Positions 31,182 through 61,914 of a stretch of 64,000 nucleotides of DNA are shown here, piece by piece. Made by a program: the position numbers and the translations under genes. This DNA is from Bispira polyomma (taxonomy: Eukaryota). The notes under the pieces were generated by a model that did no database searches, was not told the DNA's origin, and worked only from the letters and a program-made list of their open reading frames with translations. The stretch spans positions 46,686,001 through 46,750,000 of the forward strand of contig OZ287751.1 of the NCBI GenBank assembly GCA_965649765.1, given 5' to 3'. Numbering within the stretch: position 1 is the first letter of the stretch; every line of letters starts with the position of its first letter.

Positions 31182-31203
31182 CAGTCATTACGCGTAATGA
31201 CTG
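31182..31203. repeat. Perfect 22-bp palindrome (cagtcattacgcgtaatgactg) within a longer imperfect hairpin
   Basis: Direct inspection; outer arms ctcaa...ttgag. Confidence 0.9.
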
Positions 31204-35103: not shown

Positions 35104-35140
<37 letters not shown>

Positions 35141-36473: not shown

Positions 36474-36939
36474 ACTTTAACTTCTTCACTTGTACTGGGT
36501 GCTAATAATCGCCTCTGAATTTCAGGTACACTCTAATTTTCCAAGAACAATTGATATGCTAGTTTTGCTAAGAAAAGATGAAATAAACCCCTCACTACCA
36601 TAGACCATATATACACATGCCCCACATTTAACTAATCTCTGTCAGACACATCACAACACATCACCCAAGGCCCATGAAGACAATTAAGGTCAAATTCCTG
36701 CGTGCTTATAGAGGATAAACATATGTATAATACATAGCATTTGTATGACGATCCCGCCTTTTGTAAGACCAATTACATGCCAAATTTGAAATCTGTCAAG
36801 CCTTTTTTGAGTTCCTGTCCTGAAATAAAAAAATCCTTAAAGTCATTATTACTCTGTTACTAGCGGAACTTTAAAATCACCTTAAAATAGGCCTTGTGAC
36901 AAGACTCGTTTGAGTGCAACTTGCGAAGACTGAGATGTG

Positions 36940-37560
36940 ACTTACTATACTTAGAGGAGTGGCATACATAGAGAACAGAATGAAACCAAGGACAAAACCT
37001 TAAGGAACACCAAAATGCAGCTTCCACAGATCAAACAGGATGGAGTGAATCTTAATAGCCTGGAAGCAGTCAGATAAGTAGGAAGTAAACCACTTTATTG
37101 CTGAACCACAAACATGATTCCATACAACCGAGAAGGGTAGAATGGTTAATTCTGACAAACAAGTCGAGCAATACCAAGGTAGTGGGCTCGCCTCTTGTTC
37201 CTGTATAACATGTAAATGTTTCAAGCAACATAAAACCCCAAAACTAATCTAATCAAATTTTATCAAGCTAAGGAAACATTAACATCCTTTTTTATTGCCA
37301 ACACAAAAGTTTAAGTTAAATGACCCTGTTTTTATGCAGGTTGTAGAGGGTTGCTAAGGTTATGAATATTAATATGATCAATCAAATGTGTAGCAACATC
37401 ACATTTAACCAACTGATGTTCAGGAAGAACAGACTCGGGGACTCTATGATGGGCCTGCTACAGCACTGCCACACCTTTTTAGAGTTGTGGCTGTTTTCTG
37501 TGATAAGATTCCTGTAGTAATCAGGGTTGTTTTTGTTCAACACCAATTGCAAGCAATCTG
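36940..37560 (-). pseudogene. CR1/L2-like LINE fragments
   Basis: WFTSYLSDCFQAIKI..FGVP*GFVLG and DYYRNLITENSHNSKKVWQ. Confidence 0.7.
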
Positions 37561-38259
37561 CTTGTCGAGGCTTGTTTTGTTTCTGTCGTCTTTGAAAACA
37601 AACAACATGTCCGTACCCCCTGCAGTTTTGGAGAAGGGTTTAACATGGATGCATACACCACAGACCAGCTGACATCAAAATTATCTTGACATTCACATTG
37701 TAAAGTAATGAATAATGCTAAATAAGATGTGAACTTTTGTACTTACTGGCAATGAGTGTTGACGTTGTTGCCGCTTGTTTTGAGCACTTTGTTCACATTC
37801 CCCAGTTATAAGATGCTACAATGAAAAATAACTGTAATGTAAGTTTTATTGGCAGACTCAAGACAATGTAACGGAATGATTTTCAGATTATATACTTACG
37901 AAAAATGCTAATAATTACAAGTTAATATTTATCGGCTGAAGAAATACACATTAATACAAGACCACTGCCATGATATAGATCTCCTGTCACCATTAAATAG
38001 TAAATGATATGACACTTGTAAATGAAGTCCGAATGAAATTAGAATAAAACAGTACAATTTGGAGATAGAACATCCTACAGTTTTAAGTAAGCAAATCAAC
38101 CACAAAAGGTTCTCACTCCAATCTTTAAGCTTAAATGTGTCTCCATTAAAATATTCACATGATTTCCTTGTAGTTGTTTATTCCAAACATCTTGAACTAA
38201 TAATAAAGGAGACAAAAAGCTTTTTAGCTATCAACAACTCTGCTTAATCTTGAGAGTGG

Positions 38260-38550
38260 GGTCCATGGTCAAATCTGCCCCATATAAAGATTCACATCCC
38301 ACGATTTAAATTTGTTGCTTTCACATTACACACATCTAGAGCCAATTATAATGGAAGACATAAGGTATTTTAAATATAAACATCCCTGTTAGACCCTGAA
38401 AGAGGGGTTCAAGGTCAAATTTGACCCTGTAACAGGAGATACAACCAACACTTTCTTGTTAGTTGTTTCACATTCAAAACATCTAGGAGCAATAAAAAGA
38501 GAGATATATCGCCTTTTAAGTTTCATCAACCTCATTTGACCTTGAAGGAG
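38260..38550. repeat. Repeat with tgaccttga...tcaaggtca palindromic cores; related blocks at 41420-41780, 50370-50940 and 55140-55430
   Basis: Recurrent tttgaccttgaaggagaggttcaaggtcaaa and aacctctaggaccaataa motifs. Confidence 0.75.
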
Positions 38551-38714
38551 ACTTTTCCTCGGGTGTTATCAGACATATAAATCTATTCATTTGTATTGTG
38601 CATACTACATATTTATTATAGAGGAACAATTTCCCAAAATTAACCAACAGTTTTCTTCATCAACAATTTGAATTGCTCTGGTGAGGGCTAGCACTGGCTG
38701 TGTGGGTTAACTAT

Positions 38715-40145
38715 TTACACTGTGATGAGTAACTTTGTCTTAAAGCTAGAGCCTACTTCATCTATTTGTTCCATGATAGGAGCTATCTTGGTTATTTCTT
38801 TGACGGCAAGTGGCACATAATAGATATTTTGGTCGATCTCTTGTGAGTGTCCCATATGATTCATGAAAGTGTCAATGGTCTCTTGAGACAGATTTCCCAT
38901 CCTGCAGAAGAGTGTGGCTACCAGAAGAGTGTGGCTACCCTATATCAAGGTGACTTTCCAGACTTTTAAGAATAAGAACCGGTACCAGTCTGTTCACTTT
39001 TCCCATTATGTAAGCAACACTGTACTTTTCAAGGCATTGCTTGTCATTCTCTGTCATCATTTTCCTAATACTGTTGTCATTAATCCAAGAGTTTCTTTCT
39101 CTGTAATCCTGAACTTTCATTCGGGAAACTTCACTACCCCTCCTAGCATTGTGGAGTGTTAACCTTGCTAATACATATTTGCGAAGCCTGACATAATCGT
39201 TTCGATTTTCTAGCTTTTTGGTCAGGAAACTTTGCAGTCCAGAGGATATAGTATTTAACAGTTTGTCTAATTGTTCTTCTTGAGGAAGAGCAAGTGGCTT
39301 TCTGGATTCTCTCTGCCTTCTTTCTTTTAACGTATATTCAGCTTTTGAGCAAATACGAGGATAGAAGCTTTTAAAGATTTCCCATAATTCAGATACATCA
39401 TCAGCTGCAGCCCTGTCACCTTGAACTATAAAATGGCTCTTTAGAAAACTTGCTGAACTTTTAATGAGGGTGCCTAGAGCCACATTTAACCCTGGTTTGA
39501 AGGTTTCTTCATCATTGCAAATTTTCACAATAGCACTTTTAAGGTAATTAAAATTCCCAACCTTGAAAAGATCAATACAAGATGTTGTGTTTTCGCACAC
39601 AGCAACAAGCCTTGCCATTCTTCTCATCGCATTTCGTGCCTTAATTTTGGCTTCCTAGTCTTTATTTGGCTTTATTGATAGGAAAATATTCTCACCGATT
39701 AATTTTATTACTTCATCTTGCTGTATAATTTCAAAACTATCGTCTTTCCTCATTTTTTTCAGTATTTTTTCAAAGTCTGGGGTTCTTGTTGTTTCTTTGA
39801 CAATGGAATATGTCTCACTGTGGGGGATATTGCACCTTCTTTTGTGTTTTTCGAAATACCTGACATTATACGCTCCCTTGCAACTGCAACATATAACTTT
39901 CTCACCCGCAGTGTTTCACACCAACTAGCTCCTCTTCTTTTGAAAGGTGTTTCACATTTTGTCTACACATTCCCTCTTTTGGCATCTTAGCAAATTCCAT
40001 TATGCGTTCTTTTCTACTAGTTTTTCCTTCCTTTTCTTGCTAATGCTAGACACTGATGATTCTGATTTGTGACGATTCATGATGTGCCTTCTCAGGTCAC
40101 TTTGTGGCAAAAAGCAAAATGGGCACTGCCTTTTCTTTCTCTTTC
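38715..40145 (-). pseudogene. C2H2-zinc-finger plus tyrosine-recombinase (phage-integrase fold) region, with stops and a deletion
   Basis: QCPFC..LRRHIMNRH; CSCKGAY..H..RC; RLTLHNARRGSEVSRM (catalytic Arg box); GKVNRLVPVLI; HMGHS..IYY (His/Tyr). The HxxR box is lost at an 18-bp duplication near 38905-38940. Confidence 0.8.
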
Positions 40146-42219
40146 CTATAAACATATGCATTGAACACAGCTGTGAATGAAGCGGTTTGCTTTTAGATGC
40201 TGATAAAATGGCTAAAATTGGAAAAAGGTGAGCTAATTTGAATTTCTAGTGACATGGAACTCAGTTTATGTCATTTAATATTAGATGGCAAAGTGATGAA
40301 AAAGAATTAAACAGTGGTACAAAACCAGAAATATACAAAAAACCAGATGGAATACTAGGACACCTCATTTTGCTACCCCTTGGCATCCGCAAATGGAAAA
40401 CACTCTACATACATAGATATCAAAATAAAAATAATAAAACTTAAAATGCCCATCACCAGTCTTATTTACAAAGCAACTTTTCCAGGATGTATGCTCCGCC
40501 GATGAGCTACAAGGATTCAAATAATCCCAGTAGGAGTTGAACATACCACCTCACAGCTGGAAAAGAATTAAAGGAATTATGAAACAGATGGTAAATTAGT
40601 AGAAAGCCTATTAACTGTAGTAAAATGCTTAATTATTTTATTACATTTTAACAGCATGATAGCATGGTCTGCGATTAGGCCTCAACTATCATCAAAATTC
40701 TAGGTAGGACACAAAAACAACAACCCCACCACCAAGAAAATGCACAAGTCTGTCAAGTATTTCAAATCCATGCACATTCAAGCATACAATTACTTTCAAC
40801 ACACTTACACTAAAATAAGTTACCTTATTAGTTATTACCACACAACATAAATATATCGATCTGAAAGAGGGTACAGAAAACATGCTTAATAAATTGTCAA
40901 TTTGAAAAAAAATTCAAATTATTCTTACATAACCAAAAGTTGTGTTTGTTAGCCATACTACGTTTGAAATTTAGAAACTACTTATATGTTACATAACAAA
41001 ATACATGCATACAAAGGGGAAAAAAAATTTCCCTTTTTATTAGTACTCTTTTTTTCCAACAAAACTGCAATCTTTGCATTCAGAATGTGAGTAAACAGTA
41101 TACATAATTCTTGTATTTAGTTAAATCTTGGATGGGTGAAATTGGAAACCACAGACATATTCTGGATTGACATAGTCAAAATCATTTGATAATACAGCAA
41201 CCTCAAAATCACTGTAATGATTAATATTGATATGATCTTTAGATTACAGTATTTTTTACACGTGACAATAGCAGAAAATTTAATGTGGTGACAGTTTGTT
41301 TATCAACCGTAATAAGCAATCTCTATCTACCTCCCAGCATAGCTGACCACAAAAAAATACCAACATGTATACATAATAAAGTTGCTATTCCTTTTCAGCC
41401 TTGCTAGGAATCTTTTAAAATGATTAGATTTGACCTTTTGTTCGTGTTTAAAGGTCAAATTAGTGTATCCAAACTTAAAAAAGCATATATCTTACTAATT
41501 GATTATTATTGGTTCTAGCGGTTTGGATGTGATACCAACTTTGGCCTGGGATTCTGTTAATGCTATCATGTTTGACCTTGGACTCCCTTCTTTAAGGTCA
41601 AACTAAATGTCAATACTTAAAAGTGCCTATATCTCACTTATTACTGGTCCTAGAGGTTAGGCATGTGAAACCATCCTAGAGAAAACCATTCACTAAGATT
41701 ATGTTAATGAAAAGAGATTTGACCTTGAGTCAACCGTTCAAGGTCAAATTGGTATGTCCATGCATTAAAATGCTTATAGCTCACTTACTAGTTGTCCCAA
41801 AGTGACAGATCGAAATTCTGGAAAGAAATACACAGAGCCAGGTGCCTGAGGTATACAATAAACCAATCAAAAGATTTCTTCTGCATTAAAATATCTGTGG
41901 TACAGTTGATGATGTAGGCAAAATACCATGACAATTTGTCAACTGGCTAAGTCTTGACATACAATTAACAGCATTTTAAAAATGCATCACAATTATTATA
42001 AAGGCTTTATATTAACAGTGGAGAATCACATCTAAAGTAAAAGAGACAGAACACATTCAGCCTTATGCTGAGAAACAAGAAATATTGCTTATTGTTAGAA
42101 AAAGACATTTTGAATGTGTGACAAATTAGAGTTTCTAACAATTAGCCTAGACACGATAGTCAGAGTCAAGCTCATTGAATGAAGGTCAGATTGAGATTAA
42201 ATGCACAAATACAGCTGCT

Positions 42220-42350
42220 GGCGTAAACATTAGCTGCCACAATGGCTATTTTATGAGAAAGGTATTGCTTAACCCTCCTTAGGTCCCTCAGTAGTATAAA
42301 ACTAGACTTACAGACAGCTTGAATGTTGCTAGTAAAGGAGAAGTCTGAAT
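42220..42350 (-). pseudogene. CR1/L2-like RT C-terminal fragment
   Basis: DSDFSFTSNIQAVCKSSFILLRDLRRVKQYL. Confidence 0.7.
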
Positions 42351-42789
42351 CTTTTTCACATGACTTGTTGTCTTCATGGACTGTTTCATTCTTTCTTTTG
42401 GCTTTATGGTCAGATTTTTGACACTGCTGTTTAAAAGAGGATATTTCTTTACAGAAGTGTAAACACAAATGTTGGCATTAGGTTTGTGAGTAGAACTAAT
42501 CACTATATACAAGGATATATTATGATTTACACAAAATTAACTGACAGTTTATTTCAAAACTGGATCTTAAAATTAATTTGTGTTAGTGTTGGGAGTCGCC
42601 CTGTGTTTACCTGTTGATAACTTGCCCAACTGCCTGAATGATGATTGATTCACAAGCAACTAGACCTAGTGCATCGGAGACCATATTGTGTCCACAGAAA
42701 AAAACAAAGCACCCTAGCCAGCTAGCAGCCAAGTATGCACTCTATGATTTCCTATAGGGTACTTAGCCTAAAGTTTTACAATGACAAGT

Positions 42790-43386
42790 GTCATGTGACC
42801 CTGAAACGCCCAAATATGTAAAATCTAAATTTTTGCAAAATTTACATGGTAGGCTTTGGACAGCCCTAGTGGGACGAAAATTTGCTCGAAATTGCTCTGA
42901 CTCGATTTTTAAAAATTGATATGCTGGTCATGTCACCCTGGGACAAACGAATATTAAAAATTTGAATTTTTACAAGGGTTACATTGTAGACTTGACAGCA
43001 CCCTGGGGGGACAAAAATTCGCTCGAAATCGTTCTATCTGACCATTTTCAGGTCATGTGACTGTGCGACACCCTAAATATGGAAAATTTAGAATTTGCAA
43101 AAGTTGCAGGGTAGACTTTGTACAGCCCTAACAGGCCAAAAATTCACTCAAAATCGCTGTATCTCGCTCTGTTTTAGAGATATTGACCATTTTTCAAAAA
43201 ATCAATTCAATTAAATTCAGTCCTAGATATCCTTACCCACCAATAAAGATATCCTGAGAATTGGTGAAGCTAGCTGCTTTATTTTTCTTCTGGAGTGTTA
43301 AAGCCGAAAATCTCTGTACGTGTGGTGGCGGCGGTGGAACGACACTAATCTATAGTATCCCGGATGCTATCTGGTGAATACAATTA
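42790..43386 (+). mobile_element. Helentron/HINE-like non-autonomous element (internal tandem units, 3' hairpin)
   Basis: Three gtcatgtgacc..aaaattcgctcgaaat units and a terminal imperfect hairpin gtatcccgga..tctggtgaatac. Confidence 0.55.
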
Positions 43387-44553
43387 TTGACTTAAAGTTT
43401 AGATAATCATTTTATTTAACCTGTATACATTCCTGGAATTAGACGTACAGGGATCTGGCAAACTATGTTTTGAATCTTTCAACATTTAGTGTATACCGCT
43501 TCCTCTCAATATAAGCAGTAGAAGTACACAAATGGAGAAAACGGAACAAACATCTTAATTTAACAAGTGGGAACTGTGTCAAATGCCCTAAAATGATACA
43601 TATATTACTACATCAGTAGAAAGGTAAGGATTTTGTTGACTAATGAATAATATAAATTTTAGAATGACCTCATCAGGCCAGTGATACTAACAAATAATTA
43701 AATAGATGTCTAATTGTCCACTCATTAAGTTATATGTATGTAAAAACATGTTGGCCTTCTTTTTATCTTCCTGGGGAAACTGTTACATTTATGTTGATTT
43801 GAACTGTTCCAGTTCCACGCACGAATCCTGCCACAGATCAGGGGCAATTCTTATGACTAATACCATTTCACTAATTATATGTATACCTATTATAGGAGGG
43901 TGTTCCTCACTTCAACGGCTCTGGATAACTGATGAATGTACAGATAGGAGTGCCTTGAACAATTTTTTATTGAACAACAAACAGCATGTCTCTGGGCCTT
44001 GCAGTTTTAGACAAGTTTTTTACTTGCACACATACGTGGACAGCTAAGCCACAAACCCATGCCATAATGCCAGCTGACTGATAAGTCATCTGACATAAGA
44101 AGGGCATTAAGTGTTCAGCCCCCTCTCTATATACACTATTTGACAGTAATCGATAATTTTGCAAAATAGTTGTTGTATCATTATGCGACATGTAAAAACA
44201 AAATTCAAATAGTCTACATTATTATGACATCAATGACAATAATCAATAGTGTAAAGACTTGGAGTTTTGAAAACTCAAGTTTCCCAATGATAATACATGT
44301 GGAAGTCAATTTAAACTACCATTTACTCCCATAAAAATAAATAACTAACAACGCTGAAAACTTCTCTGACCCAAATCTATATGGGGGTCATGAGAGAGGG
44401 GAAGTACACATTTGCCACACACTTCCTTGGCTCACAGAGAACCTGGATTCGTTCCAGGTACAGGCAGATACAAAGGCCACCCCAATATGTGTTCCCCCAT
44501 CATTACTAATGGTACTTAATACAAGCAGGAATTTATGCTAAAGGTCTACTTAC

Positions 44554-45079
44554 TTGACCAGATGCATCAGCCTCCTGTAGTGCTTTCGCACTTTTTAGTA
44601 CAACGGGAACAAGGGTAGAGGTAGCAAAATCTTTAATACATAAAATAAATATCTTTAAATACCTTGTACCTTTGCCTTTCCATCAAGCATAATTTAATAG
44701 TTTTCTCGTAGTTTGCTCTGTTATCAAACACTTAACATACAGGCTTTTATAATGATACATACAATATTTTGGAACAATTTCAGAACAAAAACATTTTGCT
44801 AACTGGTGCAAATTGCTAAAAGTGTGATGACACCATAGCCAGCCAAAGTAATCGTGGGCTGTTCAACAAGCATATGACAAAAATATGGTAACAGCTAATA
44901 TGGAATAAGTTTACATCTGATGAATTCATTCTGTACAATATCGAATGTATACCAACAAACAATACAAACTATATTAATTTTTTTACTATGCAAATTCAAT
45001 GGTAAACATGAAGTGTTTCCCAACTAACCTCTCTCAATGAACTTTTCATGTCTTTTTAAATTCGGAATCAAAGGAGAAT
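44554..45079 (-). other. Two candidate phase-compatible micro-exons (45079-45029, 44630-44554) of the SET-YR gene
   Basis: ctttacag|..|gttagt and taaag|..|gtaagt; the joined frame DSPLIPNLKRHEKFIER-DFATSTLVPVVLKSAKALQEADASGQ is open. Confidence 0.4.
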
Positions 45080-45239
45080 CTGTAAAGAATAATTATGTAT
45101 TTCTTCAAATGTTATACATGATTACTAATTAATATCACTTTAATATCATTAATTATAATTCTTTAAACTTTTCAGACATCCTTTATGTATTAGCCCAAAA
45201 AATATAATTTTTTAGCCAAACTTAGCAATTAATAATAAC

Positions 45240-46229
45240 TATAAAATAGCAGTTTTTGCACGCAAAAACAAAGCGTCCCCAGAAACATGACAAAATTTGC
45301 TGCTGAAAGTAAACAATTGCGATAGGTGAAGTGACTTTGGTTGCATGCACAAAAGAATTGCAAGAGTAGAAAAAATCACAAAAAATTGAACAAGCAACCA
45401 TTGACCAATAAATCGGTCGCATATTCGTTCGTTAACAGTCAACCTATCAACCTAATGAATAGGTTGGAGACACAAAAATGATTAAATTTGATCAGGATGA
45501 TTTTGTCCAAGTCATAGGTTGGAGACAAAAACAAAAGAAGTTGAAATACAAGTACCTAGGTTGAAGGCAAAAAAAAGTTATTTTGACCAGGGCAATTTTA
45601 TCCAATTTATAGGTTGAAGACAAATTTTGAGCAGGGCGATTTTGTCCAAGTTGTAGATTGGAGAAAAAAACCCAATGAAAAACGCAATGGGCTGAAAATT
45701 TGCTCGAAATCCCTGTATCTCGCTTTGTTTCCGAAATATTGGCCAAAAATTGCCGTCAGACTGCTGCAGAGCCCTGGTGGGCCGAAAATTCACTTGAAAT
45801 CGCTCCTTCTTGCTCTGTCTTCGAGATATCGGCTGTTTTAGGAAAATTACTTCAGTAAAATCACAAAAATACTTATTATTCAGCCAATTTTTATCGAATT
45901 GGTCCTAAAAGTGACTGGGCCCAAGATTTTGACCTCAGGCAGCCCCCTCCCAAATTTCGTAGCACGGCCTTCTGTACTGTCAAAGAAAAAGAGAGCGAAA
46001 CGTAAATTTGAATTTTGAGTCATGTGACCTTGAGAAAGGTCAAAAGTCAGGATAAGTCATCTGGAAAAATTTTCCCAGGCCTATAATATATGTATACCAA
46101 GTGAGAGATAAATTGGCCCAGCCAGTAAGAAGTTATTCAAGCGAGACGATAAGTCTACGGCCGGCAGAGCCACACGTCAGAAAGACCAACCCAAAAACAA
46201 ATAAGCACCCCTGGCGGGGACGCTTAATT
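45240..46229 (+). mobile_element. Helentron/HINE-like non-autonomous element; paralogue at 52134-53225
   Basis: Colinear blocks 45260-45395 with 52455-52580 and 45930-46200 with 52955-53225; 3' hairpin aagcacccc..ggggacgctt. Confidence 0.65.
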
Positions 46230-46574
46230 AGAGATGATCAGTAGTTCAGGTATTCCAGTATTAAGAACATTTTACCTGTACACCAAGGTGAAATGTAACA
46301 AAATTCTCAATTGTCACTACATGAAAGTGTAGCAAAACTTTAAATATTATAAATGGAGACAACTAAACCATGCGCATTAGGAGAATTGATGCATATTTGT
46401 ATCCACTGAAAAGACAATGGATACTTGTGCTGAAGGCCTAATAAACAAATTAAAGTGGAGTTTTTGGCACGACATACAAATTTACAAAAAGATGAGCCTC
46501 AAATTGAATTTAATCACCAGAATTGATTTTTGGTTTAAGTCACTTTCAAGAGCCAAATTCATCTTTGACAGGTA

Positions 46575-46710
46575 CTTCCATGGGTAGCGGGAACCAGTAC
46601 ATATAAGTTGGTCAAGATTCTGCACTGGAAACCACCAAATATGACCTGGGATCAAACTCATGCAGGCAGGGATGGGGGCGAGTGTCTTATCTGAGGCCCA
46701 GCTACTAGCT
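46575..46710 (-). mobile_element. Degenerate SINE fragment related to the 8062 and 10672 SINEs
   Basis: Shares the agttggtcaagattctgcactggaaacca core. Confidence 0.55.
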
Positions 46711-47047
46711 CATAAATTCCTATTAAGTGGTTTCAGATCCTCAATCTTTAAGACTAATAATAAGTGAGATACAGACACTTCTAGCTGCTGATTTCCCCTC
46801 AAGCAAGAAATGGGATAGGTATAAAAAAAACTACAATGTTTTAGTTTTAAATCATCTTATAATACTGTGCCTGACTTACCAATTTGGCCAGATGATTCCA
46901 CTGAATCTGGTATTGTTTCAAAAAATATAAATGAACAAAGTAAACCATATATGACAAGATCTGTCGCATTAGATACCTGCTACATATTTGTGGCTACTGG
47001 AGAAACCAACAGAGTTTAATGATGGGGTTTAAAGTCTAATGTGACCC

Positions 47048-48290
47048 CTTTTTTTTAATTTATTTTTAAACATTTTTATTCGGTCACATGTTTACAATAC
47101 AAAAACAAAAAGAAAAGGACAATAATGAAAACACTAATGACAAGTTTTACTAAACTCTACAACAAACACAATTACTGATAACAAATATTAGCAGGAGGTT
47201 ATCTCTATGGTATTTTTTATACCCAAAATAATATTTTTTCTTCTAACAATAACAAAAAATAATTAAAAATTTCTGTTAAAGAGTGTTAAAGGTTTAATAC
47301 TTCTAGGGAAGGAGGGGGTACCTCACTTCCAATGTCTCTGCAAAACAGACAAACAGGCAGATCTCAATGCCTCAAAAAGTTTTTCATTGTGGATGCCGAA
47401 AGTATCTTTTACAGACGGTCACCACTGAAGTTTCTGAGTGGCATATATTTGGAGAAAATAAAAAGAAGCTATAAACATTTACCCAACAAATCCAAAATGT
47501 TTCGACTTGAGCAGTCATCTGTACAAAAGTCGGTGAAAAAAGTTATTAATTGACATTGGACGAGTAACTTTGAACTGAAAATGATAAATAACACCAAAAG
47601 AAATTAAGACTTAATAATGACGCTTTTTAAAGTGATCCACATCTTGTTCTCACTAATTAGGTCTTACCAGATGGAAGGTCTTCTATGGAACTCTCTAGAT
47701 GTGATAAACCTGTAATTGTATCTAAAAAAGAAGAGTTCAGTGTGATCAGTTAACCGATCATATAGTGCAGAAGTCAGATGAGCATAGTTATATTGTCCCA
47801 ATAATTTTTTTGTGTTGTTCATTATCATTGTACCTGCCATATAATATACTACAAGGGGGTGTAAAAGATGAGGAATTGTAATTGACATTGGACGAGTAAC
47901 TTCGAACTAAAAATAATAAATAACACCAAGAAATTAAGATTAAAGATTTAATAATTAACGCTTTTCATAGTGATCCACATTTTGTTCTCAATTATTAAGT
48001 CTTACCATATACTTTCATTGTTTGGGTTTGAGAATTTTAACTCTGGTGAATTAATGTAGTACTAGAAGAGAGAGGGGGACTTCTGATTTCTGGACTTTCA
48101 TCTGCATCTGCAAGTTGTTTATTTTGGTTATCTTTTTTTGTAAAAACAAGACTAAAGAAAATGGACCTGCCCCGAGTATGGATACTGCACTACAGAATGG
48201 TGCAAGAATTATATTTCTAGCAAAAAAATTCAATGCGAAACAGCCACTTAAAAGCCACTTAAAAGTTTCCTAGCTCGAATCAGAGAAAGA
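47048..48290 (-). mobile_element. Probable decayed LINE 3' end with an internal ~125-bp duplication
   Basis: aataaa plus A-tail on the minus strand at 47048-47085; CLFC remnant; 47545-47668 duplicated at 47878-48008. Confidence 0.45.
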
Positions 48291-51200
48291 GTCTGATTTC
48301 CGTCTATGACGAACATCCGACTAAGAAGAACAGAAAAAAAAAAACAATTTACCAAAAACTTTAGTATACATTACATTGTATACTTCTTAAGATGGCTTCT
48401 TCAAATTGGCTTATAATTGCACTCATATTGCACCACGTGTATCAAAACATGATCAAATTGGAAATGTAACAAAAATTGAAAGTAACTTTCATGTGCCTGA
48501 TATATTTGAGTGCAATTAAAATTACTAATCCTATTTTAAATGCTAATTAAGTTCAAATTCTTACCACTCATGTAAGTTCTGTCAGAACTAGTGAATAAAT
48601 GGGAAATGTCCACACTTGTATCTAAAAAACATGTAACAGTATCAGGTATAAACAAAATAACTAATACATCAATAAGATATTTTATCCCATGGAAGAAAGA
48701 CAAAGACTGAAGAACACAGCTACAAATTACTGCACATAGACTAGCAATTTACGAGGAATACACTGACAGCCCCTAAAGCTTCCGGCATTTTTAAACATTT
48801 AAAGGTCTGTTAATGTTTTCTCTCATTTTGGTTAAACCCAGAAAGATAGTGTTCATGCTTACATGGTCAAAGATACAGAACTACTTTGTTTGGTTATGTT
48901 GACAGATTTACTGAAAGGTTACCTTGTCTGTGTGTAAAGACCAATGAAATCACAGCTTCATGGTTGTTGACAAGATATAAACAAACTGCAAAAGTAACAA
49001 AATTCCATCCTTCGAAAATTAGAAGGCAATGTATCACTTTTGCTTATATTTTGCAACATATAAATTTTGAACCTTAAAGTAACAAATTTTATGTGTCATG
49101 AAAATTAACAATAAACTGCAATTTTCAAATGTTAATCTGTACCTAAGAACCTAAATCTTTCATAATTTTGAGAATGAGATATTTCTAACACCAAAAAAGT
49201 CAATTAATAAGATAATACGAAAGCAAAAAGGTATAAAATGGAGGAACAGTTTGGAATGAAAATAAAGTTTAACAGTAAGAATTGTGTAACGTTTCACACA
49301 GATAAGTAACTATATATTTCACGTCAAGAGTGTTTTTCAGAAACATGTAGCCATTCTCTTACAAATTGAGATTTAACATCAGAGAGAATACAGATAAATA
49401 CACACAAACGTAAACTAAACCTCAAAACATATTTTACATAAAACTTACTATCAAAAGATAACTACATTCAAATTTTTTTATAATTTCCAAATAAAAGAAA
49501 ATTCCCTATACTATAACCACTGAAAAATCTGATTGGCTGAGTGTACAGGAAGTACCACATCCCTAGGTAAGGGTGTTTTTTTTAGTGAGGTAGAAATTAA
49601 TTTTTAATCCATCAAATATCTTTATATTTTAAAGTCATTGCAGTAAGTCTGCTGTTATTTATATTTAAAATGGTATCTACAGTGCTCTTTTTGTAAAAGA
49701 TTAATACTGAGAGCACTTTTAGATTTTGGGTGATATTCTGCGATACCATCTTCAAAAAGGTCTCTGGTATCGCACCCAAAAAACTGTTTGTAATGACCCC
49801 ACTAAATACAGGACATGTATATCACATTTACAGCCATATAATGATCCATCTTTCTAGACCCAAAAAAATGACCATTTAGTGGCCACCATTGACCTTGAAA
49901 TTGAAGATCAAGAATACAAAGTAACAGGCTTATGGCTTCATCCATATTGACCAACCTACCAAAATTAAAACTTCCAGCTAAAATCTTTTGATTGAACGCA
50001 TTCTAAAGGAAATTTCTGTGGAGGCAGCATGATGGACCCAAATACATAGATTTCCCCGACTTTCATCGAGGGATGACAAAAACAAAACTTCTTCAATAAA
50101 CTGTCTATACTACTTTTTTACATAAATAACTAACTTCTCAATATTACCTTCTACTTCCACTTGTTTTTTTCCTGAAATTAAGCATATTCAATAAACACAT
50201 TTTATTGGCAATCAGGCAACAATTAATCACTGGATATTGTGTTTCGACACAGAGCATCCAAGGACGGGACATGCTGTAACTTAACATACAAACAAATTCA
50301 GTCATTCTTCATATCAGTGGTATTTGCACCCGAGATGTTTCTGCTACCGAATGTATTCTTAAGCAGAGTTAAATCAGACCGCTTCCAAATATTTAGTTGC
50401 ACAACATTTCCTATAAGCTGTCTTCAAATCTCCAACCTCTAGGACCAACAATAAGAGAGATATTGGACATTGTATAGACCACATTTGACTTTGAAGGAGA
50501 GGTTCAAGGTCAACTCGGATAACATTTGGGCCACACGTTTTCCTACAAGTTGTCATTCCATCCCAAACCTCTAGGACCATTAATAAAGAAGATACAGGCA
50601 TTATAAGTATCAATCAGCACATTTGACATTGCAGGAAGGGCCCAAGATCCCATTGGATGTCACCAAAAGATTCAGGCCACATGGTTTCCTACAAGTTGTC
50701 TTCACAAATCAAATTTCTTTGACCAATAAGGAAGGAGATATGGGGTGACATATGTATAAGGGACCACATTTGACCTTGAAGGAGGGGTCCAAGGTCAAAT
50801 CTGACACCACTAAATGTTTGGGCCACATGATTTCACATAGTTTGTCTTTACATCCCAAACCCGTAGGTCCAATGATAAAGAAGAGGGCATTATAAGTAGC
50901 CTGTAAGCGACTGAAAATTGGCCTTGAATGAAGAGGTCTAACTTCTACATATTTATAGTGGAGATATACGTCTGGTATAAATGCCAGCCATATAGTTGTG
51001 AAAACACTAGTAAGGAAAGTGTATGGCCTCACAGCCTTATATAGGCATAAATATAATAAAATATGCCATTTTGAGTAGTTTTAGCAGGGCTAAAATGTAG
51101 TTAATCAAATAGTTAATCAAAAAATGCCCAAAATAACTGAAAACAGATAGAGGAACATTTCGAGATTCCGGCAATGCCCACTTAATATTTTTAAAAACTC

Positions 51201-51349
51201 CAAAAACTTGGTATTAAAACAATAACCTCCAGGCCAGACTTGATATACTGAATGGAAGAATTTGGAATATGGCTTTGACCCTCCATTTTTATCAATCACG
51301 TTTTAAACTTTCACTTTTGCAGATGTAATTGACTATTTTTAGGCAATAA

Positions 51350-51547
51350 CTGCTTTCTCCAAAATAAGTTTGCTTCATCACCGTAATTGTACTTGATTTC
51401 TTACCCTTTTTGATAGCTCTTTTGGCAAAAAGACAAACATGGGGAGTGTTGTTCACAACCACCAGTCGAACTTCCGCATTTTGTTCTAGTCCACATCCGT
51501 CATTTATGTTTTTACCGAGAGCTTCATGAGATTCAGTGCCATCAATA
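51350..51547 (-). pseudogene. SET-domain exon 2 (SET8/PR-Set7-like)
   Basis: tttcag acceptor; IDGTESHEALGKNINDG..PHVCLFAKRAIKKG, then after a 1-nt frameshift EIKYNYGDEANLFWRK. Confidence 0.85.
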
Positions 51548-52133
51548 CTGAAATAGAAAATTGTCATACAAATTACATTAACCAATGAGTTTCATTAGTC
51601 TTTATCATCACTTTATACATTAAGCATATCATTCTTATGATCAAGATGCATGCACACAAATAAAGTTCAGTTTCTTTTTAAATTTGAGCAAATCTCAATA
51701 TCTGCTCCTTAGATGTGGGCTTAAGCTTCCTCATAAATTATACCTGTGAATATGCCCTATATCCGCTCACTGAAAACAGGCTCCAAAAAACTGTAAGTAG
51801 GGAATACAAAGTGTAAAAAGAAGACACAAACTAGAATTGAGCAGATGTCGGCAAGTATTATCAAAAAATCTAATCAGCTTTAGTTCCTTTTAACAAAAAC
51901 ATATGCTCAAAATTTCGAGAAAATCCATCCACTGGTTTGGACTGTAGAGCATCCACAAAATGTATGCCCTCTGCTGCCCGGACAGCGCAGAGAACAACTA
52001 TAACCCCAGCCTTCATGGGCTGTGGCTAAAAACTATACAAAAGCTTAAGTAGGGATTTGGATGATTTCCACCTCAAAATGAGCAACACTTTCATGACTTA
52101 TTTCACAGACTGACTGTAACATATACAATTATA

Positions 52134-53225
52134 CTAGAAGTTGTGGCTGCGAGGTCACAGTTTACTGGAGTGACGTTATGACATATGAAGTGGCGTTTCT
52201 TAGTAGATGTAACAACTTTTAAAATATCGCAAAAATCGAAATCCTAAAGCCAAATATCTGTAAACATGTACCATTTTTCAGAAAATAACATCAGAATAAA
52301 TGTTTGTAGACCCCTAGCTTTCCACTGATACCAAAAATGGCCGACTCAAACCCCTAAAATACACTTGCGTATTAATATTACACACACAAAAATGATAAGA
52401 ACAACAGGGCTGATTTCAACTGTCATCAAAAACTAGAAAATGGGGAGTTTTTGTTTGAAAAACAAAGCGTCCTCGGAAGACATGAAGAAATTTTTTGCTG
52501 AAAGTAAGGACTGTGATAGCTGAAGTGCTGAATTTGCAAAAGAATTGCAAGAGTAAAGAAAAACCACAGAAAACTGCAACATTAGATTAGGTCTTATGAA
52601 TTGCATTTAAAAAAATATTTTCTATACATTGTTCAATTTGTTAAAAATTGATTTTTGGGTTATGTGGGCCCATAATTCTCTCGAAATCTCATTCCTTTTT
52701 GAGATATCGGCCATTTTTTTAAAAAAAAATCGATTTCGGATCATGTGACCCTGCGACGCTAAAATATGGAGAATATTACGTTTTGCAATGTTGCACAGCA
52801 TACTTTGCACAGCCCAATCGCTGTATTATGCTCCATTTTGGAGATATCTGATATTTTTGAAAAAATATATTTTTGGTGAAAACGGAAATGTGGAAATGCT
52901 CATTACTCTGACATTTTTTATTGCGTCAGTCCCAAAAGTGTATCCTTACAATATTGCCCCTCAGGCAGCCCCCAGCCAAATTTCAAAGCGAGATTGTTTG
53001 TACCTTCCATTGTCAAAAGATAAATTTGTTTTTTGAGTCATGTGACCCTGAGAAAGGTCAAATGTCAGCGAAGGTTATCGAGAAAAATTTTCCCAGGGCT
53101 ACTCTATATGTGTACCAAGTGTGAAGTAAATTATCCCAGTCAGTAAAAAGTTATTCAAGTGAGATCATAAGTGGAGTCTACAGAGCCGGCAAGAGCCAGT
53201 GATATGAAAAACCAACCCAAAAGCA
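52134..53225 (+). mobile_element. Helentron/HINE-like non-autonomous element inside the SET intron
   Basis: Paralogous to 45240-46229; 52315-52380 also matches 226-297. Confidence 0.65.
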
Positions 53226-53962
53226 AACAAGTGAAAATGCAGTCAGAGACTGCAAATTAATCCTCGCGCTAATTTGGTGGGTTGTGAAGCCATATTTGCT
53301 TACAAAATGCAGTTATGCTAAAACATATCATCAATGACGAAAATCGTCAAAGTAGGAGCTGGCTGTAAATAAGATCATTGGGGACGCATTTTCAAACAAA
53401 ATCTAGCCGTCTTTGGTGGGTTCCGAAACTATATTTGTTTACAAAATGCACTAAAATTTATTAGAAATGAAGGAAATTGACGAAGTAGAAGCAGAAAAGG
53501 CGTCCTTCTCTTACGTCTCACTGCACATCTGCTTGTTGATCTAAATGCCTGTTTTGGTATAGGGAAAATATAAAATGTCATCTTAAAGCCACAGTTCACA
53601 ACAGATTTTTATCAAATTCAGCACAAATGTAGAGGTCACCATTTCCAAATATATACGTAAATTTCAATCCATTTGATGCAGTAGTTTTTGAGTAATAAGG
53701 CGTGCTACACACACAGACACATGCACACACAGACCAAATACAGTATCCTTCGCCAATTCCTCACAGAAAGGATAATAATCATAAACCAAAAATACAGAAA
53801 GTGATCTTTGAATCTTGATTGCAGTAAAGATTTTGGTTGTAGATTATAGACATATTAAGCCAACATAAGGTAATATAATATAAATATTATCTGAAAAATA
53901 CTTTGTATTGCCAATAAGTTAATGTACTGCAATTATCAGACTTCTTTCAAAATTTCACATAC

Positions 53963-54129
53963 CACATTTGTTTCCCCTTATACTTAAAAAAAAAACATGT
54001 AGCATCCCTCGCCACTGTGTTTGTGTTTTTTTTCAACAATCAAGGCATCTTCATATGTGAGGAGTCGTCCTCTGTAATTCAGGAGGAAATCTCCTTTGTT
54101 GAAAGGCTGCGTTGAAAAAACTCTATATC
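53963..54129 (-). pseudogene. SET-domain exon 1 (SET8/PR-Set7-like)
   Basis: ttttag acceptor, GYRVFSTQPFNKGDFLLNYRGRLL..EGCYMFFF(K)YKGKQM, donor TG|gtatgt; one extra T in a T10 run. Confidence 0.85.
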
Positions 54130-54675
54130 CTAAAATAGAAATAGATAGAACCTCAATATTCTTTAGTAATTTATCATACACAATAAGCAAATCCAAGGAA
54201 TATAAAACAAGCTGCTTGCAGTGAGTTTAGTGTAGATTAGGATTTGCCTAGTTGTGTATGATAAAATTCACCACAGATGAATATTGTTCGATTTATTTAC
54301 ATTCTTTAAAGACGTTTTAGATACAAATTTAACAAAATAACGTAATTTTAAAGCCACTTCCATGAATATTTGATCTGTTTTAGCATTTAATGCATGTACT
54401 TCCCGCTACACAGCATAATTAAAACACACAGTGAATGGCAGCCAATATAAATCACAATTTTACTCCATGTTGAATCTCCTAGGGTGCAGTGTGGTATTAA
54501 AAATTTAACACACACCTTTTACCACAGGGTTGTCTAGTGGTGTGCAGGCACTTGCATGTAATAAATAATATATAGAGATATACATAGAAGGTAATATGTC
54601 AACAGTTTGTTGCCATTCGGTTGTTTTCTACAACATACGACAATAAGTCAACACAACTGTTGACTTATTATCCAC

Positions 54676-54910
54676 NNNNNNNNNNNNNNNNNNNNNNNNN
54701 NNNNNNNNNNNNNNNNNNNNNNNNNNNNNNNNNNNNNNNNNNNNNNNNNNNNNNNNNNNNNNNNNNNNNNNNNNNNNNNNNNNNNNNNNNNNNNNNNNNN
54801 NNNNNNNNNNNNNNNNNNNNNNNNNNNNNNNNNNNNNNNNNNNNNNNNNNNNNNNNNNNNNNNNNNNNNNNNNNNNNNNNNNNNNNNNNNNNNNNNNNNN
54901 NNNNNNNNNN
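54676..54910. other. Assembly gap (N run)
   Basis: Ns. Confidence 1.
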
Positions 54911-57900
54911 GAACTGAACATACATCTAATGCTTTAAGATAATAAGAATGGCTACACTACTTTTCTCAATTTCAGTTCATTTTCTATAATTTTATTACAA
55001 AAGCCATTTTTTTTTACTTTCATAGGGACTCCCGAGAGTCTGCTTACTATTGTTTAGGACTACCCTTTGTTTTTCTGGTAGATTCATCGCCCAAAATCCG
55101 GGATGTTGATTAATTAATAATTAATTATTGACTTTACATTGGACCCTGAAGGAAGAGCCTACGGTTAAATCAGACCACATTAAAAAATCCAGTGTACATA
55201 ATTTCTGGTAGGTTGTCCTCATGTCCCAAACCTCAAGAACCAATAATAATTGTATCTAAGGGAGATACAGGGCATGAAAAGTGTCAAGGACCATATTTGA
55301 CCTTGATGGAGGAGTTGAAGGTCAAATGTGACCCCATCAAAAGATACAGAGTACATGATTTTCTATAGGTTGACTTTACATCCCAAAATTCTTGGTCCAA
55401 TAAGAAGGACAGTGCATTAAAAGTATCAAATGATTTAGTGATTTACTATTATTATTGTGAAATTTAAAGTAGGTACTACTCAAAAAGCTATGGACCTACT
55501 GGTCTGAAACTTAGACATGGCCCAGTATGTGAAAAAGTAGGTAAACAACATAATTGACGTAACTGTTCTAAACTCAAAAGTTTTGGACATGTAAGAAATC
55601 TACTCAATGTTGAAAAGTCAAAATAGCTATTTACTCTGTTAACTTTGGAGCTACAGTTGTGAAAATTTGCCATGACAGAGTAAATGAAAAGTAGGTGAAC
55701 AATATTTCACAAAAGTCATTTAAATTCAATAGCATTGGAGTAAAAAGTGATTTACGCAATGGTGAGATATCAAACTAGCTATTGGTATTTATTATTATTT
55801 TAGCTATGGAGCTACAGCTTTAAAACTTCACTCTGATACAAAATAAAGATGTAGCTGGAAACCATATTGAGAAAAATATTGTACCTTTAACAGCTATGAA
55901 GATAAAAGCCATTTACTCATTTTGATCACTGCTAAAAACTGAAAATACCTATCACACACTTAGCTATCAAAATAGACCGTTAAAAAAGGTACCATCTTGT
56001 ATTTACAGAGAAAGTAGCTAAACAACATATTTTACTGAAATGTTCTAAATGCAGTCATTTTAGACTTCTAAGCAATGTACTCAAAGTAGCTAGCAGCGCT
56101 ATTACTCACTTTACTATGGACCTAGGTGTGCAAAGCAGCAAAATAATGGTGGGGGCCAATGTGAAATAAAAGTTTTAAATCAGAAAAAGAGGCTGTTTTT
56201 CTTTGACATCCCTATTGACATTATCAAAAGTAAGAGTTTTACTCAGGAATATGATAAATATCGCTTATTAAAGAAAAAGGCATTGTACACAATAAAGACA
56301 ACTATAATATACTTTCTCACTCTAATTTTGCACAAATTTGTGACTCCAACAAAGTTGATCAAGCCATTAACGCACAGTACTTTTGCAAAAAAATAGGCTT
56401 TTCCAAAAAGTTAAACAAGGTTTTTTTCACCCTTGTTGGCATTGAAAAAAAGTTTTGGTTTAAAATGAGTAAAAATGTTTCTTTTGGTTTAAAAGGGTAA
56501 AACCGTTGCCTTGGGAGCACTGCATCCGCTGCCGGCTCTTCGAGCAGCACAAGTATAACTAAAAGTTATGGTAGCTGTAAAATCATCCACTCACCTCGTA
56601 CAACAGTGACCATGAATTATTGACTCATGTTTTGTGAGTATGAACTTAAAATTTTATTGAAGGATTATTACAATTTGGCATTTTATTTGCTATATATTGA
56701 AAGACAATACACTTACCAACATCATCAGATATTTCAATGTAAAGCCTTCTGGGTACAAACCCACTTCTACCCACCACTTCGCCTGATTTGTAGGGGATTC
56801 TTTCTGAATGAAAGATTATGGCACGAGTTACAAGTAAGTGTGCATGCAAAAAAGAAGTATTCATTTATTGTCATTCAAGGGCTATTATTAAGTCTTAAAC
56901 ATAAGGCTAAAAGATATCATTAATGAAGTAGTAGTTACTGCCACTACTTACAAGTTTCTGCTGTGAATTTCTTTGCCAGGAGTAGAGGCATAACAGCAAA
57001 TATAAATGGCAAATACTATTGTATGAACTTTCCACCTTAAAAAAGCATGACAAGTAGCATATTAAGAAACATGTTAATTTTAAAGACAAAAGTATCCTGA
57101 TATAATCACCATTGGACGTTGATATCAAATTCAATCCTCTGAAAAGATTTACAGCCCAGGGTCTATTTATCCAATTTGTCATTATCAAACAATGGTGTAA
57201 TGTAAATCTTTTCCTGGGAAAAACACTCTCAGCACCAATAGAAAGTGCAGTAAAAGGTTAATATTGAAGTGTTTTATTTGTGGACACTAAGGCACTTACT
57301 TTTTTTTTTCTTTGAAGTACCTTCTATGCTTCGAAGAAGCTGCAAATGCAAGAAATTAATATAGAAAATTTTACCATTTTTTTAACAAATTGCATTATAA
57401 ACTCGACTGGATTCGTACCTTAAAATTGGAATGATCAAGTAGGCAAAACAATTATTATTACGAGTTACATATGCGTTCCTTACGATTGCAATCTGTACCA
57501 CATATTTTGACTCATATAAACAATATGTCAACAAAAAATGGGTTGACATATTATTCTATGTTTTAGAATAGAATGCCTAATGTCAACAACTTGTTGACAT
57601 ACAAATGTCTGTAAATAGGGAAAAACTGTTTCATGAAGTAAATATTTTAATATGCCAAAAAAAGATTGGACCATCACAACAGAGTGATCTATGTTCAAGA
57701 CTAAACAACATATGAAAATCAATCAGATGGACTGTCTCAGAAAGTATATTATACAAATTGTCCAAAAAGTCAACTGACAAAATTCTCTGGCCAGAAAATT
57801 TCACACCGGTCCAGTATTGTACTTGACTCAAAAACATCTATTTACAATAATATTTACTTATTTTGGATTAAATATGAAGAAAACATGAGCAAAAACACTT

Positions 57901-60491
57901 CTGGCCGTCATGCGTAAAATGTTATTTGTAACGTGACCCATAGCATATTTGATCAAAATGGTGTTGTCCAAACAGTGATTCGAACTCTGCAACACAAAAT
58001 AAGTAAAAATATTGGTTTCTGTCCCTATTTAAGTACATAAATTCACAAAAATATTCTTATTTCCTAAATATCTTAATACATCAAAATGACACTGGACAAC
58101 CATACATATATTATGTTAAATGTGAAGAAATCAAACGCATGTCAAATTGCCAACAAGACAGACAAGTCATTGTAGCCCACATGAGAATATACCTTTAAAA
58201 CATGACAAATGCAAGCAGTTATGTCAAATCATTAAGTTTTAAGGTGTTCTTTTGGAAGTACTGGAAGGATGTTTGAGTTTAATATTCCTGCAGACAGATA
58301 TTCAGGCCCGTCATTACCGTTTAATTTTGCTTGGTTCATTTTGTCGAGGTAAAAAAAAAAACATTGCAAGGAATAATCATAATGCGTATGGAATAAAACT
58401 AAAATTAGAGGTTGAACAAAAATATTGCAAAAAAAATATATATATATAGAATATAGGTCGAAACGTCTCAGAAAAATTGGGTCGAAACGTTGTGAAGGTT
58501 GAATCACCTGGATATCATATTCATATATAAAGCAGTACTGTATATGACTTCTTATTGTAGTTCTAAGGAGTATAGTAGATATGCCTATTTTCGATATGTG
58601 CCTATTTTAGATCGGCTGGTTCCCAATGCTCTAGTTATGTATTGGTTTATGTTTATTGACCTATTTACCGATAGATAACAACAAATACATGTTTTTCTGT
58701 GTAGATGTGCACTTTTATTTGATATTAATCAGTGCAATAACAGGTGATATACTCGTAAACATTGTACAGAAGCGGTCACAACAATGTCCGGGTCATAATA
58801 GTGTCTGTTGCATTTTTAAAGAACTTACTGACAGAAATTAATACGTATTTCGAGAAATATTTCCCAGAATCGAATAAAAATGTTGTATGTCGGAAAGTAA
58901 TTAATATCGGGAAATACCGGGAAGTATAATGGAAGATATCAGGTATCATTGGGTATTCTTGATTCAGGTGTCTTGTAAATTCGACATTTGCCGTTTTTCT
59001 TCAATAACTAAATGTGTTTTATATCTCTTACATTACAAAATATATAGCGATCTTTTTCAATGTTAAATAAGGCCATAAAGAAATAGTTAAAACTCGCGTA
59101 TCTACGAGACACAAGGCTAATATATGTTGGTGGTTGACGGTTAAATATCCTTAAATGTAAGTTGGGGCTTCTAGGTGATCTCCACGATGATAGATTGCCT
59201 CATTTGCATGAAATTCTTCCATTGTCGCTCATACATGTGCTTTACTTCTGAGGTACATCAACTACGAATTTTATAAAAAAACTAGGTCTGCAGATATAAC
59301 AATTAATTTATCTTTTAATGGCTAAAGCTTTATTAAAGATATAATAGATATAAATTATCTAAATTTATAATAAATCATAAATCGGCCACCGTACAATAAA
59401 TGTGTCATAACTTCAAACTGATTAAATTTATTGACCTAACAATACTGTACTTACTTGAATATTAGTATTGTTTTACTTTAATCCTATGGTCCATTTTAAA
59501 CCTAGATTGTTAATAATTACTATTTTAAATGTGACGGTCGATTTACAACTGGCGGCCGAATTATAACCAGAGGCAGTAAATTACAAAATACTAAATCTTA
59601 TTTTTGAGAAAGCTATGTTTTATACCTTGAAATGTGTGTCGACCAATGTCGTGACTGGACACTATTGTGACCGGCCATGTATCTCTTATGTGATCCAAAA
59701 CCGGCACAACGAGGATACTTGGGTACTGCAGTTACTGAGCAGTATTTCAGTTGTTTATAAATTTACGATCCGGTTTTTGGCCAATTTCTCCACGAATACT
59801 TACTCAATCACAATAAGAATTATATTTCTGGATTCTGTGGATCAGGACCTTTCCAATAATACCCATGTTGTTAGGTACATCAATTCTAAACATTCCGAAA
59901 ATCGTCTGATTGTGATACTTATGTTCTGTGTATGTTCTGTCATACAGTTATTTCCACGCAAATTTCACTCTAAATTAGCAATTAAGGTGAAACAAACATA
60001 TTTAATAATTGTAACAGCAAAGTAACACAGATTTGTAACCTATTATTACTCCTATGTTTACACTACATTAAGTACAAATACCATACAAACCATTTGCTTT
60101 CCATAGCTCAAACCACAAGCTGACATCTTGCCAAAAACAGGAAGTGGCATTGTAGGTGGCGCTGTTTTATTGATTATTAATTTTTGTTTAGATTAAAAAA
60201 GAAGTATTTTTACGGTGCAATTTAAGAGCATTTTGATGTAATCCTTTTAATCAATATGTACACAAGATTATATATGATTTTTGAAAAAAAGAAATTTTAC
60301 AGCGTCATAAAACTCTTAAAGGTGAAGGACAAAAAATAAAATTAAACAAGTGTGTAGTTCACAGTTCAATTAACATTGTTGAAGTAATTATAGACTTAGT
60401 TCTCAACTACTTCAACATTCCAACATTCATTTATAGCTTGTGAATAATATGTCAGCACCTATTGTGTTGCCTTATTGTCGTATGTTGTAGA

Positions 60492-61912: not shown

Positions 61913-61914
61913 AT

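Follow-up and report, generated by a model that had tools for sequence, protein, structure and literature searches.

Mobile DNA elements that move by a tyrosine recombinase (YR) without a reverse transcriptase (RT) are known from fungi and animals. The Starship elements of fungi, with a DUF3435 captain YR, are giant, low-copy DNA elements of variable length with short terminal repeats and target-defined direct repeats; in some families the targets are AT-rich (PMC11162782). Cryptons A, F, S and I have the YR as their only transposase, with a proposed circular intermediate and short direct repeats that reflect the target; they are described as lacking TIRs and as having direct repeats of 4-6 bp, CryptonA carrying DUF3504 and CryptonF GCR1_C (PMC3212892). 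CryptonV (Kapitonov and Jurka 2012, cited in PMC8869645) and Crypton-H are RT-less YR DNA transposons of animals, and the CryptonV families, described from cnidarians, insert specifically in microsatellites. The DIRS/Ngaro retrotransposons also integrate by a YR but carry gag, RT-RNase H and split or inverted LTRs. Transposons with their own SET histone methyltransferase are known among oomycetes, namely HarbingerS and MuDR (Repbase Reports 2014, cited in PMC12730594), which use DDE transposases. Finally, expanded sets of KMT5A-like genes with an N-terminal SET domain were reported in Hydractinia (65 genes) and S. purpuratus (61 genes), activated at genome activation; they were read as host chromatin regulators, and the text of that paper mentions neither a recombinase nor a transposon (PMC10368294), although three Hydractinia models in its supplement carry DNA_BRE_C. 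In the reviews that we could read, few giant DNA transposons are listed in animals (Teratorn, Polintons), and giant YR elements have been regarded as fungal.

SET and recombinase exons in the window

We analysed a stretch of 64,000 nucleotides (hereafter the window) of the 1.04-Gb genome of Bispira polyomma (GCA_965649765.1, contig OZ287751.1, positions 46,686,001 to 46,750,000). The original prediction, that two SET8-like exons and a zinc-finger/YR region lie on one strand, is confirmed, and a third, upstream SET exon was found in addition (Table 1). Three of the four exons are frameshifted. SET exon A ends TG|GT and SET exon B starts AG|T, giving a Cys codon across an intron of 2,415 bp; searched separately, each hits Pfam SET (E 0.034 and 5e-4), and exon A matches KMT5A/SETD8 structures. 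The terminal exon, opened by the AG at 40147-40146, holds the motifs NARRGSE and HMGHS..Y. Its deletion removes residues 387-444 of the intact relative, including the second catalytic Arg. The YR shows no similarity to the DIRS-type YR in the window (hhalign probability 0.1), and neither gag nor RT was found in register with it.

Table 1. Features of the window (positions within the 64,000 nucleotides).
Position	Strand	Feature	Basis and remarks
56717..56803	-	First SET exon (N-flank of SET), AG..GT, ends in phase 1	4-bp deletion relative to the intact sister family (famB2); tblastx 50% identity to the famB2 exon; same donor position
53963..54129	-	SET exon A (GxG position, GDFLLxY, GCYMFF)	GxG reads G-Y-R; 1-base frameshift, one extra T in a T10 run
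51350..51547	-	SET exon B (IDGT..LGKNIND..EIxYxYG..WR)	1-base frameshift; splice donor lost in this copy
46880..50171	-	Candidate symmetrical phase-1 linker micro-exons (50171-50148, 48621-48565, 47721-47668, 47518-47483, 46906-46880)	Read from the sequence, unverified; three recovered by a consensus scan with weak enrichment
38715..40145	-	Terminal exon: C2H2 finger, CxxC-H-C finger, core-binding domain, YR catalytic domain	Two frameshifts, one stop, one deletion; fold predicted from the intact relative L008
38922..38943	-	Deletion scar	About 150-170 bp lost, 17-bp duplication; T-x-x-R catalytic motif removed
36674..60491	-	Minimum extent of this element copy (family A)	Collinear, in pieces and mostly at 90-97%, with copies on contigs C4, C10, C11, C1, C14 and C5; bounded by an unrelated Harbinger-type repeat below and an N gap above
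54676-54910		N gap	
60492-60676		N gap	
60768-64000		Polinton-like fragment	Separate repeat with other genomic copies

The chain of exons linking SET to YR is less clear. A scored scan for splice sites missed exons visible by eye, while a consensus version gave 25 sense against 4 antisense candidates in the window but no enrichment over shuffles in famB2, the young sister family of the window's own family (family A). A tblastn search with homologues of 600+ aa found no linker exons, and a search for RNA returned no run for this organism. Tandem 310-bp units in famB2, which resemble the window at 40571-40478, were considered as repeated micro-exons but not accepted, since their donor is not conserved.

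Dispersed copies, termini and target

The SET exons are multicopy and travel with the YR, introns included: 25 dispersed loci of the 27 SET-exon loci in this genome have a YR homologue downstream on the same strand, and the introns are collinear between copies of family A. The true termini of family A were not found, searches for its downstream continuation hitting only unrelated repeats. In famB2, however, six copies could be delimited. They span 47-85 kb, three of them (on three contigs) are 99.8-99.98% identical over 60 kb, and all six start and stop at imperfect inverted termini of ~22 bp abutting (TA)n. A search with the terminal motif gave 22 hits against 0 in the control, 16 of them bracketing or preceding YR loci. 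The YR exon lies 17-20 kb from the right end and tens of kb from the left end; in a further family, famB3, the left end lies 76-92 kb from the YR. The flank of the copy on contig C8, the only local flank that could be read directly, is not matched at the other five copies. In Armadillidium, four copies share a sharp boundary at TATA or (TA)n and diverge at one base position into four different flanks. The element is larger than the original prediction had guessed, and has termini and a target.

FamB2 has an open YR exon. Pfam and PDB sequence searches of the intact YR exon gave nothing, and only 9 of 70 family members gave weak PF00589 hits, but the AlphaFold (AF2) model of the intact relative (pLDDT 91.8) has a predicted core-binding plus catalytic integrase fold, with XerH/XerA as best matches (Foldseek XerH E 8e-5; VIA Z 14.8, 306 aligned, rmsd 5.2). 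The R, E, R, H and Y columns are conserved, and R324, K369, R442, H469 and Y478 are invariant or >=90% conserved in 70 sequences; the first His of the usual HxxR is replaced by Thr439 (TxxR). Third-position excess (17/14/29 in SET exon A and 87/58/154 in the YR) shows purifying selection on both. The SET domain is of SETD8 type (best PDB match E 1e-16), SETD8 structures being the best PDB hits for the sequence P0193 and for famB2 exon B, and ranking second onward for the window's exon A. A single-sequence fold prediction of a natural SET domain failed (pLDDT 39).

Beyond this genome, SET lies upstream of YR in 14 of 25 long homologues, and single SET+YR proteins are annotated in Strongylocentrotus, Anneissia, Apostichopus, Armadillidium and two syngnathid fish, that is, in three phyla. 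Atlas clusters with 92-98% SET share the YR model. The family is large: 11,203 clusters at 50% identity hit the profile (2,606 at E<=1e-30), spanning cnidarians, echinoderms, arthropods, molluscs and fish, and filed as 'uncharacterized' or as KMT5A-like host genes.

Interpretation and alternatives

We read the locus as a decayed copy of a giant, intron-rich DNA transposon, mobilised by its own tyrosine recombinase, Starship-like in scale and CryptonV-like in its TA microsatellite target (probability about 0.8). The original prediction of a single multi-exon SET-ZnF-YR gene in an intron-rich YR element is supported, with the exon chain from SET to YR in this genome inferred. The gene would run from an N-terminal SETD8-like domain in three exons, through a fast-evolving low-complexity linker, to one large ZnF-YR exon; that SET and YR form one polypeptide here, as in the annotated relatives, is inferred and appears likely, although three of the six delimited copies gave no SET hit. 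It is also probable, though again inferred, that the recombinase binds the terminal cores (TGTATAG / CTATACA, which resemble TA repeats) and the subterminal CAATATGGCA repeats, excises the element as a circle, and recombines that junction with a TA run, so that the flanking TA acts as a direct repeat rather than as a DDE-type duplication. No empty site was seen, although the present data do not allow such a test, and no circle junction was seen among the contigs examined from three runs of unknown type, which covered the right terminus and showed the end sequence; these runs come from one study and may be the assembly sample. That the SET domain is an active lysine monomethyltransferase, most likely for H4K20, tethered by the YR/ZnF to keep element ends or targets open in germ line and early embryo, is only a tentative inference. 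The family may account for the unexplained surplus of SETD8-like genes activated in early embryos of Hydractinia and sea urchin. More speculative still, and in our view doubtful, is an undescribed, animal-wide superfamily of Starship-scale YR transposons whose fused SETD8-type enzyme writes H4K20 methylation at its own ends or targets, is expressed at zygotic genome activation, and accounts for much of the 'KMT5A expansions' of hydrozoans, echinoderms and fish.

System by system, the elements share with Starships a size of tens of kb and short direct and inverted terminal repeats, but they occur in animal hosts, none of 70 members hit PF11917 (DUF3435) at E 0.01, and the YR is the last exon of a long gene, 25-90 kb from the left end, instead of a 5' captain, with an N-terminal SET domain. 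DUF3435 clusters do appear at 0.88-0.89 in an ESM feature search, which is a lead only. Only nested Harbinger and LINE fragments were found in the 67 kb read of the about 85 kb of the intact element, where small-exon genes would be missed; among these fragments is one degraded antisense LINE RT piece inside famB2. Compared with Cryptons A, F, S and I, the elements are far larger, have imperfect inverted termini (the TA runs on both sides could serve as the direct repeat), and gave no hit to DUF3504 or GCR1_C in 70 members. HarbingerS and MuDR use DDE transposases in oomycetes, whereas here a YR occurs in animals, with a SETD8-type domain fused to it in annotated relatives. Host KMT5A has a C-terminal SET with an intact NHS.

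Of the alternatives, the one that survives best concerns function only: in the same mobile element, the SET domain may not be an active H4K20 writer but may bind histone H4 or SAM as a reader or targeting module, methylate a non-histone substrate such as the YR itself, or sit in a gene separate from the YR. This remains quite possible. The NHS motif reads ND-x or N-A/T-x in all fused proteins examined (KNIND locally), several fish copies also lack the YDYG tyrosines, and SET-less copies have intact ends and an intact YR. On the other hand, the Asn, both YxYG tyrosines and the LxEY tyrosine are kept in the intact local family and in most invertebrate relatives, exon A is under selection, and fused gene models exist.

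A second possibility, hardly less plausible and compatible with our mechanism, is that these are the full-length autonomous partners of a named Repbase group (CryptonV or Crypton-H), so that the YR lineage is known and only the size, the introns and the SET fusion are new. The microsatellite target of CryptonV, the presence of homologues in Hydra and Hydractinia, and the existence of Crypton-H families in zebrafish (PMC10942377) favor it. Against it, we found no paper that links any Crypton to a SET domain or to tens of kilobases, none of 70 family members hit DUF3504, and Kojima 2025 names only HarbingerS and MuDR as examples of SET-carrying transposons.

It is unlikely that a host SET-YR gene family (a domesticated recombinase) was spread by segmental duplication or assembly error. 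The 60-kb blocks of near identity full of nested repeats do look like duplications, the flanks of most local copies could not be read, and many copies are pseudogenes; yet the six copies start and stop at the same inverted motif next to (TA)n, the C8 flank is not matched at the other five, the Armadillidium copies diverge at one base position, and the catalytic residues are conserved. Least likely is an integrated large DNA virus or Polinton-like element with a YR integrase, for which the large size, the probable occurrence of such integrases in Polinton-like viruses and the nearby Polinton-like fragment might speak, since the gene is intron-rich, no relative was found in viral contigs, the Polinton-like piece is a separate repeat, and the YR exon is the only long ORF in the 67 kb of the intact family that were read.

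The SET and YR exons of the window

The features lie where the original prediction placed them, namely two minus-strand SET exons that join in phase, followed downstream by an exon with zinc fingers and tyrosine-recombinase (YR) motifs. The two SET exons restore a Cys codon across a 2,415-bp intron; searched separately, both hit Pfam SET, and exon A matches SETD8 structures. In addition, a third SET exon emerged from comparison with a sister family. The copy is dead: it has frameshifts in all SET exons, a Gly-to-Arg change at the GxG position, a lost donor after exon B, two frameshifts and a stop in the YR exon, and a deletion that removes residues 387-444 of the intact relative (N gaps were left unfilled).

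SET and YR travel together in this 1.035-Gb genome (G000, with contigs labelled C1 and so on; the window is G000:C4:46686001-46750000). The YR piece has 66 matches, and the SET exons 25 and 18, the SET hits defining 27 loci. At 25 of these a YR homologue lies downstream on the same strand, mostly 12-36 kb away (one at 90 kb and one under 0.1 kb; at C1 exon A is locally inverted), while with about 50 YR loci in 1 Gb chance would give, by our estimate, roughly 0.1-0.2% per locus. The loci fall into at least five families. In family A, to which the window belongs, the interval is collinear, introns included, mostly at 90-97% with copies on C11 and C1, and upstream to the N gap at 60491 with copies on C4 and C5. 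Three copies match down to 36674, where an unrelated Harbinger-type repeat begins in the window; the termini of family A were not found.

Features of the window and of related loci (window positions unless a contig or sequence record is named)
Location	Strand	Feature	Remarks
56803-56717		Third SET exon	
54129-53963	minus	SET exon A	Ends TG|GT
51547-51350	minus	SET exon B	Begins AG|T
from 40145		YR exon	C2H2 finger, CxxC-H-C finger, NARRGSE and HMGHS..Y
60768-64000		Fragment of a dispersed repeat	rve integrase hit followed by ORFs that look Polinton/Maverick-like
31200-36683		5.5-kb dispersed repeat with a Harbinger DDE fragment and 86-bp tandem units	Cuts off the SET-YR element; interrupted by a young LINE (32982-35430, about 97% to many copies)
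4100-8300 and 19100-25700; 12500-17400		Two degraded DIRS-order retroelement pieces and a Harbinger element	
G000:C10:53854486-53854533		Two terminal-type motifs head to head across a 10-bp TA run	Resembles a right-end/left-end junction (circle-junction-like or tandem insertion) of a related family
G000:C7:65395138, C8:1178948, C9:56963814, C11:29864109		Left ends with no YR match nearby	Probable non-autonomous derivatives
G000:C5:24373246-24373661		Diverged right end with no YR match nearby	Probable non-autonomous derivative
G000:C8:4.14-4.23M, C9:22.55-22.64M, C2:89.55-89.66M, C12:45.03-45.12M		Family B3	Mosaic elements
G000:C11:50265587-50266085		SET exon A homologue about 60 bp from a YR piece	Internally deleted copy
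G000:C8:21049485-21061266		Two family C YR exons 11 kb apart	Opposite orientation
L021:1293-5185 (sequence record), versus the last 3 kb of the element in records L039/L040		Diverged (82-88%) direct copy of subterminal right-end DNA inside family B2	62-bp repeats bearing the terminal motif; about 19 kb from the left end
L048:3060-3974 (Hydra vulgaris locus)		Intronless protein-kinase gene	6 kb upstream of a family YR gene

Element ends in a sister family and in Armadillidium vulgare

The whole element is seen in a young sister family, B2, which has an open 544-codon YR exon in five of six copies. Copies on C5, C11 and C12 are 99.8-99.98% identical over the 60 kb compared, and all six share one end 14-20 kb past the YR, followed by (TA)n. 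That end carries several CAATATGGCA-type repeats in both orientations, and a genome-wide pattern for (TA)5 followed by this motif gave 22 hits against 0 for the control: six are these right ends, 14 are a related left end in inverted orientation, and 2 form a head-to-head pair. Ten left ends lie upstream of B2 or B3 YR loci. The delimited elements measure 85.3, 83.8, 83.4, 68.6, 55.5 and 47.2 kb, of which the three shorter ones gave no SET hit. The left ends of family B3 lie 76-92 kb from their YR; this family shares the left end and 99% upstream DNA with B2 but has a YR only about 58% identical and a different right end.

The two termini align as imperfect inverted repeats of about 22 bp. The few bases between the TA run and the left core differ among copies, and the three near-identical copies share one variant; this is what strand exchange by a YR over a short overlap could leave, perhaps in the manner of the coupling sequences of Tn916. 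The flank on C8 is an unrelated repeat not matched at the other five copies, although only this one flank could be read, so that an insertion at that TA run is not formally excluded. In Armadillidium vulgare, four loci of an annotated 1,284-1,306 aa SET-YR gene agree up to one base position 7.5 kb past the gene, ending in TATA, and then run into four different flanks, two of them (TA)n. The same end logic in a distant host is the strongest independent evidence of mobility.

The predicted recombinase fold and the SET domain

Pfam and PDB sequence searches miss the recombinase; 9 of 70 relatives hit PF00589 weakly, and none hits DUF3435 or DUF3504. The AlphaFold model (pLDDT 91.8), however, matches XerH and XerA best (Foldseek E 8e-5; VIA Z 14.8). 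R324, E327, K369, R442, H469 and Y478 are conserved, and Thr replaces the first His. By profile it is unrelated to the DIRS-type YR in this window. The family is large, amounting to 11,203 representatives at 50% identity (2,606 at E<=1e-30), with named members in Hydra, Hydractinia, oyster, snail, sea urchins and sea cucumber; no relative was found in viral contigs.

Of 25 homologues with more than 250 residues before the YR, 14 carry a SET domain upstream, a count that includes isoforms and near-identical copies. They are annotated in Strongylocentrotus, Anneissia, Apostichopus, Armadillidium and two syngnathid fish, and two Atlas clusters with SET in 92% and 98% of members match the YR model. 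The Armadillidium model has the same layout: a split SET, low-complexity linker exons, and one terminal YR exon. The domain is closest to KMT5A/SETD8. Between families A and B2, differences concentrate at third codon positions (SET exon A 17/14/29; YR 87/58/154) and splice sites are kept in the same phase, so both domains were under selection. The NHS motif lacks its His in every fused protein examined, while the Asn and, in most invertebrate members, the YxYG tyrosines are kept; activity is therefore plausible but open. In this genome, for which there is no RNA run, the join itself is not shown; the linker is too divergent for tblastn and candidate phase-1 micro-exons in the window are only weakly enriched.

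Proposed mechanism and relation to known elements

The feature is real, and is best read as a pseudogenised copy of a giant TA-targeting SET-YR DNA transposon family that is recently active in this genome and widespread in animals. We infer that the gene is expressed in germ line or early embryo. From the anatomy and from the Crypton model (PMC3212892) we further infer that the YR, helped by the zinc fingers, most likely binds both ends, excises a circle and integrates it into a TA run that resembles the terminal core. More tentatively, the SET domain may modify or read chromatin where the protein is bound, most simply H4K20me1, favouring transcription or access. SET-less and YR-less copies with intact ends would be non-autonomous derivatives.

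Literature searches found no description of a SET-YR transposon, but three neighbours exist. CryptonV families are animal YR DNA transposons that insert in microsatellites (PMC8869645), a target preference also seen here, and it is possible, though in our view somewhat less likely than not, that this YR lineage is CryptonV or Crypton-H. Starships are giant fungal YR elements but are defined by a 5' DUF3435 captain (PMC11162782), which is lacking here. SET-carrying transposons are known as HarbingerS and oomycete MuDR (PMC12730594), both of them DDE elements. The present element most likely works like a Crypton or Starship, is not a Starship, CryptonA/F or DIRS by the tests run, and may be related to CryptonV/H.

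The proteins themselves have been seen before: the supplement of PMC10368294 lists DNA_BRE_C in three Hydractinia models. The sea-urchin accession examined by us was not found in that supplement, so the identity of the two sets is likely but not shown gene by gene. A Hydractinia SET gene also carries a kinase domain (PMC10368294 supplement), and the kinase gene near the Hydra vulgaris YR gene is possible cargo. Finally, two syngnathid fish gene models and an unnamed protein with repeated SET-YR units, and a sea-urchin locus with two SET genes in tandem (protein and locus records P0198, P0218, P0230; L047), are possible tandem arrays of the element.
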